The translations under genes and the position numbers were made by a program. The notes below the pieces were generated by a model. It was given only the letters and a program-made list of their open reading frames with translations. It was not told the origin of the DNA and ran no database searches. Shown here piece by piece: positions 19,829 through 22,149 of a DNA stretch of 64,000 bases (its first letter is position 1; every line of letters begins with the position of its first letter). The stretch lies in the sequence record MZ574431.2; one strand, 5' to 3'.

Positions 19829-19858
19829 AGCTCGTCACGACGACACGAAATATGACAT

Positions 19859-19891
19859 GGCCCGCCGGAGCGATCCGGCGGGCCTCTTTTT
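19859..19891 (+). terminator. Rho-independent terminator of the replication operon
   Basis: GGCCCGCCGGA-GCGA-TCCGGCGGGCC followed by TCTTTTT. Confidence 0.85.
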
Positions 19892-19962
19892 GTTCTGGTT
19901 TGAAAACGATTGCCAATGTCCACCCTGAGTGGACAAAACGGCCAGCAGCTAAACCGCGCATG

Positions 19963-19992
19963 AAAAGGCCCGCCAGATCGCTCCGGCGGGCC
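19963..19992 (-). terminator. Minus-strand Rho-independent terminator (near-copy of 19859-19891, inverted)
   Basis: Minus strand reads GGCCCGCCGGAGCGATCTGGCGGGCC-TTTT. Confidence 0.75.
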
Positions 19993-20275
19993 TCTGGGGT
20001 AGGGGAAAGCCGAAAGCTCGGCTGCCCAGGGTAAGGACTGGCCCGAAGGCGCCTTGGGTCCGGTGATCCGGGGTAACGGGTCCTCCCCGCGCCCTCACCG
20101 GCCCCAAAGCAGAGGCTGTGCAGCCTGCTCTGTCCTGGCTCCGACTCGCTCTTGCTTGGCCATCCAGCCTTGCTTCACCGCACGCCGCGTGAACCCATCA
20201 CCGATAGGTGGCGCCCGCCCTCCCTTCCAGTCGGCTCGGGGCGGGACGAAGACGCGTCACAGCGCCTCCGATGTC
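19963..20275 (-). ncRNA. Candidate structured ncRNA of unknown family
   Basis: Own promoter (-35 at 20302-20307, -10 at 20280-20285), own terminator, multiple helices including a C(UUCG)G loop, no credible ORF. Confidence 0.5.
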
Positions 20276-20279
20276 CCCC

Positions 20280-20319
20280 ACCATAGCGACCCCGACGTAG
20301 GTGTCAAGAAATGCGTCAT
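20280..20319 (-). promoter_or_regulatory. GTGACG-N6-TTGACA-family promoter on the minus strand
   Basis: ATGACG-CATTTC-TTGACA-N16-TATGGT. Confidence 0.65.
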
Positions 20320-20529
20320 GAAGAAAGAGGGCTTGACGCCCACCTTCAGCGTGGCATCCTGCCTGGGCATCGACAACCCAGGCCTCCTCTTCCGTTGGGA
20401 CTGGACCGGATTGCGGGTGTGGAGGCGTCCTGTGGCGCTGGACTTCCGGGGGACCCTCCACACTGACACCATTTAGAATTCACGTCGCGGCGACATAATG
20501 CTTGACACGGCTCACGAGGTAGGTTACAG

Positions 20530-20925
20530 GTCAGGAGTTGTCGGCTGAAGGGTCCTTCGGGACCTGGATGACGGGCTACATAGACACTGTACTGGACCGG
20601 GGTGCGATTCCCCGCGCCTCCACCACCAAGTCCCCCGGCTGGAGCCCACAAGGCTCCACCGATCCTGCCCAGCGAGGGATCGGCATCTGAACGGTTCGGG
20701 GGACTTTGTACTGGGGGCGATCAGCATCGACAGGCAGAAGAAGTGGAAGACGCGACACGGCATGGCTGCCGGTTCCCATCAGGGTTCGCTCGGCCAACAT
20801 TGATAAATGTCAATGCTTCGAACGACAACGACGTCGTGGTTTCGACCATGACCTCGGTCAAGCTGGCCGCTTAACGGCTCGGGGTTCAGAAGGCGCCTTT
20901 TCACCCAATGGCCTTCAGCTTGCCC
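20530..20925 (+). ncRNA. ssrA: Circularly permuted two-piece tmRNA
   Basis: T-arm and acceptor CGCCTCC-A-CCA end at 20625; 5' GGGGGCG at 20713 gives G3:U70; tag frame ends ...SVKLAA-stop (20872-20874); GCTGAAGG 20544-20551 pairs with CCTTCAGC 20912-20919; TTGACA at 20502. Outer ends approximate. Confidence 0.9.
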
Positions 20926-20929
20926 TCAG

Positions 20930-21140
20930 GGGCTCAGAGGACAGGCGGCGCAAGCCGCGCGATCAACACCAGGGGGCGGCCTGGGTCCCGAAACCGCCCA
21001 CTCCTCCTGCTTTCGCAGGCGGGATCACCACCGGCCCTCAGGCTGGTTCTGTCGGCAAACGATCAACCTGCCGGTGCTCTGATCCCGTCTACGAAAGCTG
21101 GAGGTTCGGCGCCGCCCTCGGGAGGCATCGAGCTTTCATC
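20930..21140 (+). ncRNA. Candidate structured RNA domain between tmRNA and tRNA-Met
   Basis: GCGGC-GCAA-GCCGC; 21019-21027/21080-21088; 21029-21035/21070-21076; 21093-21099/21131-21137. Confidence 0.45.
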
Positions 21141-21143
21141 TGG

Positions 21144-21220
21144 TGCGGGGTGGAGCAGTCCGGTAGCTCGCTTGGCTCATAACCAAGAGGTCAAGGGTTC
21201 AAATCCCTTCCCCGCTCCCA
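21144..21220 (+). tRNA. tRNA-Met (CAT), initiator-like
   Basis: Cloverleaf; anticodon arm CTTGG-CTCATAA-CCAAG; unpaired 1:72 (U:U); encoded CCA. Confidence 0.92.
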
Positions 21221-21249
21221 AATCTTCGCCTATATAGGCAAGTAGACAA

Positions 21250-21563
21250 GGCCGCTGAACCGGCATCCTCGGATGTCGATGAAAGGTCTAACCTCGCGTC
21301 GTTCCCTGGTCAGTAGGGGAGCGGCAGTCGGAGCAGATAAGGCGGGCGCGCAGCGGCCGAGATAAGGGCTTCGATTAGTCGGTCGGCGGGCTAGAGGGAT
21401 GAGAGGCCAGATGTCTCCTGCCGGAGGGACGCTGGCCGAACCTTACGATCTGCTTTCCAGGCCTCACGTTCGGCCCCAGTCAATGGGGTCAGGGGTTGAG
21501 GCTAGACCCCGGCGAGACGCCTGTAGCAGGCTCACAAGCTAGGACGTGCGGCCTGGAAAGCAG
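21250..21563 (+). ncRNA. Candidate structured RNA domain between two tRNAs
   Basis: 21250-21257/21351-21358; 21405-21410/21432-21437; perfect 14-bp 21450-21463/21550-21563 enclosing three small hairpins. Confidence 0.5.
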
Positions 21564-21568
21564 GCCGG

Positions 21569-21643
21569 GGTGACATAGCTCAATGGTAGAGCGGGGGCCT
21601 CATACGCCTCAGGTTCTTGGTTCGAGTCCAAGTGTCACCTCCA
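21569..21643 (+). tRNA. tRNA with CAT anticodon (elongator Met or Ile2)
   Basis: GGTGACA/TGTCACC acceptor, GGGGC-CTCATAC-GCCTC, GTTCGAG T-loop, CCA. Confidence 0.9.
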
Positions 21644-21799
21644 AACCATAGCAGCGCCGTACCGGTCACTGGGCATTGCGACCCACACCCACGGCTCAAG
21701 GGACCGGCGCCGGGACCTTGAAGGGGTTGGCCATACCCGGCACAAGGCCAAAAGGAACCCAGCCCCAGGTACGCCTCGGGTTGGGTTTTCCTTTTTGTA

Positions 21800-21874
21800 G
21801 ATGCCGTGGCAGAATGGTAATGTGCAGGACTGCAAATCCTGTTTGTGCGGGTTCGAGCCCCGTCGGCATCTCCA
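21800..21874 (+). tRNA. tRNA-Cys (GCA)
   Basis: GATGCCG/CGGCATC acceptor, CAGGA-CTGCAAA-TCCTG, U73, CCA. Confidence 0.93.
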
Positions 21875-21891
21875 ATCCCGAAAGAGACGCC

Positions 21892-22149
21892 ATGACCGCG
21901 CCACTCCGCTTCGATGACGATCGTCTGGACCATGATGAATTCACGATCGCCTTAGCCACGATGCTGGCGCGCCGCGATGGCCTGGACCTAGGCGCCCTGC
22001 GCAACTTCGGTGAGACCGATCTTCCGGGGCCGAACAAGTACGAGTACCTCCGCAGCGCCGAACGCTTCACCGAGCCTTTCCTGGGCTCGAAGGTCGTGAC
22101 CCCGACCGAGCTAGCCGAGGTGTGGCTGAGCCTCCCGCCGAAGGCCTAA
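21892..22149 (+). CDS. Hypothetical protein
   Basis: ATG after GAGA; phage codon bias. Confidence 0.65.
   Translation: MTAPLRFDDDRLDHDEFTIALATMLARRDGLDLGALRNFGETDLPGPNKYEYLRSAERFTEPFLGSKVVTPTELAEVWLSLPPKA

Follow-up and report, generated by a model that had tools for sequence, protein, structure and literature searches.

Phage tRNA clusters are usually annotated as tRNA genes separated by junk spacers. With regard to this habit, positions 20,930 to 21,563 of a 64,000-nucleotide (nt) stretch of sequence record MZ574431.2 (the window, to which all coordinates refer) pose the question of what is encoded on either side of an initiator tRNA gene, tRNA-fMet, at a locus where the spacers are better conserved than tRNAs. 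A sequence-only reading had offered two answers, either a single large RNA of the GOLLD type with the tRNA embedded in it or two separate, undescribed non-coding RNAs released by tRNA processing. We find here a set of independent, structured non-coding RNA modules under selection, termed element L, domains I and II and module III, that form several units. As far as can be judged from sequence, separate RNAs released by tRNA processing would fit the structure, conservation and position of these modules.

The 1.6 kb around the stretch in question are 100% identical to the Caulobacter phages RB23, C1, C2 and J4, jumbo phages of the genus Bertelyvirus with genomes of about 312 kb, 99.8% identical to phage BL47 and about 85% identical to CcrSC and CcrBL9, and only parts of them were matched in CcrColossus and CcrPW. 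ARAGORN and Rfam detected four genes, all on the plus strand, in the order permuted two-piece transfer-messenger RNA (tmRNA), tRNA-fMet, tRNA-Met and tRNA-Cys. The segment from element L to module III is located between these genes on the same strand, a terminator follows only after tRNA-Met, and neither an internal promoter nor an internal terminator was found within the stretch from tmRNA to tRNA-Met.

Folding, conservation and covariation of the spacers

In agreement with the sequence-only reading, both spacers flanking tRNA-fMet are highly folded. Comparison of minimum free energies (MFE) with those of dinucleotide-preserving shuffles yielded z-scores of −4.5 for positions 20922-21143 (MFE −114 kcal/mol) and −6.1 for positions 21221-21568 (MFE −177 kcal/mol) on the plus strand. 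The reverse strand of the latter segment reached a z-score of only −1.1 and the structure is therefore specific to the plus strand RNA, an asymmetry that is due to G.U pairs. The GNRA loops reported for these folds did not hold up: only GCAA at 20950-20953, which lies inside the tmRNA, is real, and most of the others are GAAA strings within stems. The loops actually present in the stretch are CCUC/CUUC, CUA, GGUCAGUA, GCA, GCC, GAGGCUA and GUA.

When RB23 was compared with CcrSC and CcrBL9, identity amounted to 95 and 90%, respectively, for domain I, 88% for domain II and 86-89% for module III. The corresponding values are 13-74% for neighbouring genes and intergenic DNA, 64-65% for the intervening loop of the tmRNA, 73% for the body of tRNA-Met, in which many compensatory changes have occurred, and 82-83% for tRNA-Cys. 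The modules are thus subject to purifying selection. A further, diverged Bertelyvirus-like relative, detected in run X2 (longest contig 253 kb), is about 88-92% identical over positions 20500-21900, and wastewater DNA run X4 also contains a relative matching this part of the window.

Conservation of this kind might also be expected of a small protein gene or of an element acting at the DNA level, such as protein-binding sites or an origin, and an open reading frame (ORF) of 47 amino acids (aa) with an ATG start codon indeed exists at 21399-21542. Its start codon and frame are lost in CcrSC and CcrBL9 and one- and two-nt indels occur throughout, so that coding is excluded. In addition, the strand specificity of the fold and the compensatory substitutions described below argue for RNA, and a protein gene or DNA-level element is very unlikely as the source of the conservation.

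Module III (21446-21567), as delimited by a covariance model (R1) and by covariation, consists of a three-arm junction closed by a helix of about 24 base pairs (bp). This helix includes the perfect 14-bp stem 21450-21463/21550-21563 that had already been recognized. Only 1 nt separates its end from the first position of tRNA-Met (21569), and in CcrBL10 the module ends at the start of tRNA-Met. No variation occurs in the loop of the central arm (GAGGCUA) or in two strands of the junction, GUCAG and AGCUAGG, and the two other arms vary freely in length. Pairing of the GAGGCUA loop with the anticodon arm of tRNA-Met was considered and rejected because the arm changes in CcrSC and CcrBL9 and the loop does not.

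In an alignment of nine module III sequences, 98.2% of all cells are paired and 22 of the 47 pairs are compensatory, a level of covariation that was attained by none of 500 shuffles, while slid controls gave 2 at most. The alignment was fitted to R1 and is biased toward structure; MAFFT-based alignments agree with it. Within the window, R1 scored 142.8 bits on the plus strand and 37.9 bits on the minus strand. Homologues were recovered from CcrBL10 (68.1 bits), from phiCbK, Karma, Swift and Ccr29 (61-70 bits) and from L024 (55.5 bits), an IMG/VR contig that represents a metagenomic relative. On the other hand, module III was not found in the genomes of CcrColossus and CcrPW, and searches of 141 genomes from the family Caulobacteraceae with R1 and with R2, the model used to find domain I, returned matches at chance level only (E about 0.006-0.008 per genome). 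Nine further IMG/VR matches to a module III motif were dismissed as chance, as was one match to a motif of element L (L009), since they stem from coding DNA, lack tRNAs and receive no R1 score. Module III constitutes an RNA family.

Between tRNA-fMet and module III, a variable short hairpin with about 60% identity among Bertelyvirus sequences (21221-21248) serves as a linker and is followed by domains I and II, which were delimited by RNAalifold and pair counts and, for domain I, by R2. Domain I (21249-21392) comprises a closing helix and a five-way junction with four arms and carries an invariant symmetric internal loop, AGAUAAGG/GAGAUAAG, as well as an invariant loop, GGUCAGUA. A purine-rich single strand (21393-21404) leads to domain II, a 14-bp hairpin (21405-21437) whose tip is reshaped in the X2 relative with pairing being kept. 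For the whole spacer between tRNA-fMet and tRNA-Met (spacer 2), RNAalifold predicted 110 pairs in three domains on the basis of three Bertelyvirus lineages, with 99.7% of cells paired. Eight pairs exhibit compensatory double changes, which was matched by 0 of 500 shuffles and by no slid control, and of the 15 variable pairs all but one keep pairing in all three sequences. Domains I and II were not found outside of Bertelyvirus when relatives and genomes were searched with R2, and an IMG/VR scan for a domain I motif recovered known Bertelyvirus only.

Could the modules on both sides of tRNA-fMet nevertheless be parts of one giant RNA? GOLLD (about 800 nt) and ROOL (about 580 nt) are single large RNAs, and the locus studied here resembles them in its association with phages, its position next to tRNAs, its elaborate folding and its unknown function. 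The 9-nt complementarity across the tRNA that had been noted between GAAAGCAGG (21556-21564) and CCTGCTTTC (21006-21014) exists but lies at the level of chance, as by our estimate about 0.2 such matches are expected between two segments of these sizes. The pairing is lost in CcrSC and CcrBL9 (GAAACCAGA), and both partners reside within local helices supported by covariation. Folding of the whole 678-nt precursor retained the local modules and offered one additional option, in which 21104-21135 pairs over a long range with domain II. This pairing is not maintained in CcrSC and CcrBL9, where indels destroy its outer part. Covariation supports local helices only, and no supported helices join the two halves. 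Neither GOLLD (RF01998) nor ROOL (RF03087) nor any other Rfam family matched positions 20300-22000 at E ≤ 10, apart from tmRNA and tRNAs and from weak matches to hya and ncRv12659 (E 0.7-8) that were dismissed.

The order of the modules bears on the same question. Module III lies between tRNA-fMet and tRNA-Met in all matched phages except L024, where it is found between tmRNA and tRNA-fMet, i.e., upstream of the latter, and this difference in order identifies the modules as independent units. In contrast to GOLLD and ROOL, the locus consists of independent modules that measure 120-150 nt each, are strung together in a row and are restricted to Caulobacter phiCbK-like phages, and a single GOLLD- or ROOL-like RNA wrapped around tRNA-fMet is highly improbable.

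At gathering score over the whole window, Rfam 15 matched nothing but tmRNA and tRNAs at the stretch in question. While the tmRNA part is of a known kind, element L, module III and domains I and II correspond to no catalogued Rfam family, and we found no published description of them; the literature on Caulobacter phages that we located mentions tmRNA only as an ARAGORN count or as a citation. Identities as RNase P RNA, ribozyme or tRNA-like RNA were discarded because no model scored and the motifs are not conserved. The likeness of GAUGAAAGGUC to CR-I and of CUGAUC to the hammerhead core exists at eye level only and was rejected.

Element L and the end of the permuted tmRNA

The region upstream of tRNA-fMet (20930-21140) had been read as one spacer throughout. 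This applies to positions 21004-21133, which constitute element L, and not to the first 73 nt of the flagged stretch (20930-21002), which are covered by the 3' domain of the tmRNA. The circularly permuted two-piece tmRNA (20565-20874) was recognized by ARAGORN and by Rfam model RF04321 (73.9 bits, full model). Its acceptor piece carries the CCA end at 20623-20625 and is followed by the intervening loop; the coding piece starts at about 20713 and contains the tag ORF (20809-20874) ending in ...NDNDVVVSTMTSVKLAA. The 3' domain of the coding piece (20875-21002), with extra hairpins and pseudoknots, matches the end of the alpha_tmRNA consensus, terminates in the pseudoknot CCAGGGGGCGGCCUGGGUCCCGAAACCGCCCACU and is 98 and 94% identical between RB23 and CcrSC and CcrBL9, respectively. 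The consensus of Rfam alpha_tmRNA has a terminal pseudoknot ...GGCAACAGAAacCucCACU / ...CAACAGAAacCucCACU, as seen on a Caulobacteraceae ssrA gene. Full-length matches to this model (RF01849) in CcrPW and CcrColossus end at position 2807 of L005 and position 2811 of L004, respectively. Both ends align with RB23 position 21002 (...GGGGGCGGCCUGGGUCCCGAAACCGCCCACU), and 20930-21002 is therefore the 3' pseudoknot domain of the permuted tmRNA.

In agreement with this assignment, 20565-21002 shares with alphaproteobacterial two-piece tmRNAs (RF01849, RF04321) the permuted order, a G3.U70 pair in the acceptor stem, a tag whose last residues are LAA and, at its end, the pseudoknot ...CCGCCCACU. The phage copy differs from them in its unusually long tag and in an insert of about 95 nt (20875-20965) that separates the tag stop codon from the terminal pseudoknot. 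This insert comprises a pseudoknot-like GGGGUUCAGAAGGCGCCUUUUCACCC and two hairpins, is partly common to L024 and is lacking in CcrColossus and CcrPW. A further difference concerns termination. In bacterial alpha ssrA genes, the terminal pseudoknot is followed by a U tract (UUUU) that acts as a terminator, whereas this tract is missing from the phage copies, where the pseudoknot runs into element L within 1-2 nt and transcription continues. As a consequence, the 3' end of the phage tmRNA must come from processing.

Element L was delimited by RNAalifold and by model R3. Its core is a bulged helix of about 24 bp, formed by 21004-21028 and 21079-21103, that encloses variable hairpins and the invariant GAUCUGUCGG; a second hairpin (21104-21133) follows, and a further 10 nt lead to tRNA-fMet. 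Eight pairs of the core helix are compensatory according to RNAalifold analyses of five and of nine phages. As an example, GGGAUCA/UGAUCCC is replaced by GGAGGCG/CGUCUCC in CcrColossus and by GGGAACAC/GUGUUCCC in phiCbK. Among Bertelyvirus sequences both helix strands are nearly invariant, and identity over the whole element is only about 75% because its interior is variable. R3 matched CcrColossus and CcrPW (about 101-102 bits), the phiCbK-like phages (46-47 bits) and CcrBL10 (35.6 bits), in each case directly after the tmRNA and before tRNA-fMet. Element L, too, constitutes an RNA family.

Its invariable neighbourhood with the tmRNA allows a different interpretation, namely that element L is a phage-specific 3' extension retained on the tmRNA coding piece, where it would modify trans-translation, e.g., through stability or factor recruitment. 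The coding-piece 3' end is free in two-piece tmRNAs, and element L always stands directly after the terminal pseudoknot, in Bertely-, Colossus-, Shapiro- and Poindexterviruses alike. On the other hand, a search with R3 found it in none of 24 bacterial permuted tmRNA (ssrA) loci, which had been collected by a scan of genome contigs for the tmRNA T-arm and served as negative control, and the Rfam alpha_tmRNA model ends before it. Furthermore, a wastewater RNA-seq library contains a 191-nt contig that agrees exactly with positions 21007-21195 and extends from just past the end of the tmRNA into tRNA-fMet; its lack of connection to the tmRNA speaks weakly against retention. We consider a tmRNA extension improbable.

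The same juncture is also where a purely cis-acting role has its strongest case, as the phage tmRNA lacks a terminator. According to this explanation, an endonuclease, double-strand-specific or other (of the RNase III type or phage-encoded), would gain access to the precursor at the long helices of element L and module III, or these helices would be folding insulators; in this way they would separate tmRNA and tRNAs and set their ends, and the excised pieces would have no function. Entry of the tmRNA into element L after 1-2 nt, the absence of the U tract and the resulting demand for 3' processing are consistent with it. So is the length of the helices: with about 24 bp each, starting 1-2 nt past the tmRNA end in one case and adjoining tRNA-Met in the other, both reach the at least 20 bp of an RNase III-type processing stem and abut the ends of mature RNAs. 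However, a cleavage stem would need neither a five-way junction as elaborate as that in domain I nor invariant loops and internal loops, the sequence core of module III has been kept despite its changed position relative to the tRNAs, and the primary sequence of the helices is more conserved than the tRNAs themselves. A role confined to processing is thus a serious alternative that we nevertheless hold to be rather unlikely.

Proposed stable RNAs from a tRNA-punctuated operon

We favour the interpretation that the modules are released as stable RNAs from a polycistronic 'translation RNA' operon punctuated by tRNAs and that they make contact with a partner, and assign to it a probability of roughly one in two. 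A single precursor would comprise the tmRNA (to about 21002), element L, tRNA-fMet, an RNA of about 350 nt with three domains, tRNA-Met and the terminator. RNase P would cut at the 5' ends of the tRNAs (21143/21144 and 21568/21569) and would thereby generate the 3' ends of element L and module III, in each case at the base of the long closing helix or close to it, while processing of the tRNA 3' end at about 21220 would provide the 5' end of the spacer 2 RNA. The species set free would be element L, the spacer 2 RNA of about 350 nt and, possibly, module III on its own. Their ends would be protected by terminal helices of about 24 bp, so that they may resist exonucleases and accumulate, and the invariant unpaired motifs GAGGCUA, AGAUAAGG/GAGAUAAG, GGUCAGUA and GAUCUGUCGG might offer recognition surfaces to a protein or RNA partner during infection. 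The analysis has shown the folds, their strand, purifying selection, covariation, modularity and the distribution across the phage subfamily Dolichocephalovirinae; that the RNAs are co-transcribed, cut out by tRNA punctuation, stable and active in trans is inferred. The 191-nt contig is a weak hint at a precursor containing element L and tRNA-fMet.

Several points weigh against this interpretation. The contig could derive from DNA, no partner has been identified for any of the modules, and the evidence for domains I and II comes from three sequences only, all of them closely related. A processing site that acts purely in cis would likewise present long perfect helices adjacent to mature RNAs. 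Lastly, module III is separated from the tRNA by about 100 nt in the phiCbK-like phages and by about 270 nt in L024, so that the helix does not abut the RNase P cut in every phage.

There is precedent for such RNAs in phage T4, whose tRNA cluster gives rise to stable RNAs (species 1 and 2, rnaC/rnaD) that are structured, are not tRNAs, are co-transcribed with tRNAs and are released by tRNA-processing enzymes; to our knowledge, their function has not been established. Like these, the modules of the Caulobacter phages lie among tRNA genes on the same strand. They are related to the T4 RNAs neither in sequence nor in fold, and differ from them in their greater size (about 130 and 350 nt), in having several domains and in their linkage to tmRNA and initiator tRNA. 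In Escherichia coli, two spacers that are transcribed as parts of tRNA operons, 3'ETS-leuZ and the metZ-metW-metV spacer, are known to act as small RNA sponges after processing. The latter stems from an initiator tRNA operon as well, but both are short, largely unstructured and act by base-pairing, whereas the phage RNAs described here are large and rigidly folded.

With regard to a possible partner, the YrlA Y RNAs of the Ro60/Rsr system deserve attention. They are modular RNAs in which a long stem closes a junction of several arms, and are sometimes encoded by phages close to tRNAs. Module III differs from them in that its alignment contains neither a T-loop nor any other tRNA-like motif, and YrlA did not match positions 20300-22000 at E ≤ 10. 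The TROVE domain (PF05731) is absent from the genomes of RB23, CcrSC, CcrBL9, phiCbK, Swift and CcrBL10 and present in CcrColossus and CcrPW. In these members of the sister genus Colossusvirus, it occurs in a 469-aa TROVE/Ro60-vWA protein (minus strand of L078, 913-2322, for CcrColossus; L082 for CcrPW). The spacer between tRNA-fMet and tRNA-Met of Colossusvirus contains T-arm-like motifs and a weak YrlA match of 23 bits (L004, 3533-3645). A Ro60/Y-RNA pair may thus take the place that module III has in the other genera. By analogy with the role that this pair may have in Colossusvirus, element L, module III and, in Bertelyvirus, domains I and II could target translation or RNA surveillance in trans while the phage takes over the cell, e.g., by serving an RNA-binding factor of host or phage as scaffold or decoy, a possibility that we hold to be rather unlikely.

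If this possibility is true, the Dolichocephalovirinae carry a dedicated set of undescribed structured RNAs that are hard-wired into the operon for tmRNA and initiator tRNA. At least two RNA families with clear covariation, both tied to the phage tmRNA and the initiator tRNA, extend across this entire subfamily, to which the model Caulobacter phage phiCbK and its relatives belong. Caulobacter infected with phiCbK or RB23 accordingly offers a genetically tractable system for asking what tRNA-linked structured RNAs do, a question that dates back to the T4 stable RNAs and today concerns GOLLD and ROOL as well.

Further features of the operon

Upstream of the RNA operon, a consensus scan detected a promoter-like region on the plus strand (20472-20507) that consists of TTTAGA-16-CATAAT at 20472-20499 and a conserved TTGACA at 20502-20507, the latter being invariant in five phages. 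The preceding region (19829-20476), for which GenBank lists a coding sequence (CDS) of 52 aa, gp200, exhibits 44-64% identity between RB23 and CcrSC/CcrBL9 with many gaps and is far less conserved than element L, domains I and II and module III. The GenBank records of RB23, BL47, CcrSC, CcrBL9, CcrColossus and CcrPW annotate the tRNAs and omit the permuted tmRNA. In the BL47 record, a hypothetical CDS (gp217c; L006, 1880-2005) has been called on the opposite strand inside the tmRNA. Both annotations are corrected by the present analysis.

The tRNAs were identified by ARAGORN and Rfam, and for tRNA-fMet (CAU; 21144-21220) the earlier assignment proved correct. This tRNA has an encoded CCA end and a U1.U72 mismatch, possesses only two of the three G-C pairs that are canonical for the bottom of the anticodon stem and is nearly invariant across the aligned sequences of Bertelyvirus and Colossusvirus. 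A pattern scan of metagenomes for tRNA-fMet returned 12 contigs, none of which contained the modules. On two metagenome contigs, L016 (4266-4687) and L023 (5139-5564), tRNA-fMet of the phage type is present twice at a distance of about 270 nt, and searches with R1 and R2 were negative in both cases.

tRNA-Met (CAU; 21569-21643) is of the elongator or Ile2 type. It is followed by spacer 3 (21644-21799), which is conserved (92% identity between RB23 and CcrSC/CcrBL9), does not exhibit covariation in the Bertelyvirus alignment and ends in a very strong hairpin and U tract (21750-21797) that resemble a terminator. Since this terminator is located 2 nt upstream of tRNA-Cys (21800-21874), expression of the latter requires read-through or a start of its own. 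In CcrColossus, CcrPW, L024 and the phiCbK-like phages, tRNA-Cys is found upstream of the tmRNA. Finally, tRNA-Cys and the second tRNA-Met(CAU) are 75 nt long in Bertelyvirus and 85-89 nt long in CcrColossus, CcrPW and the phiCbK-like phages (L004, 2316-2402 and 3637-3723; L097, 686-774 and 2945-3029), a length that implies long variable arms, which are unusual for tRNAs of these identities.

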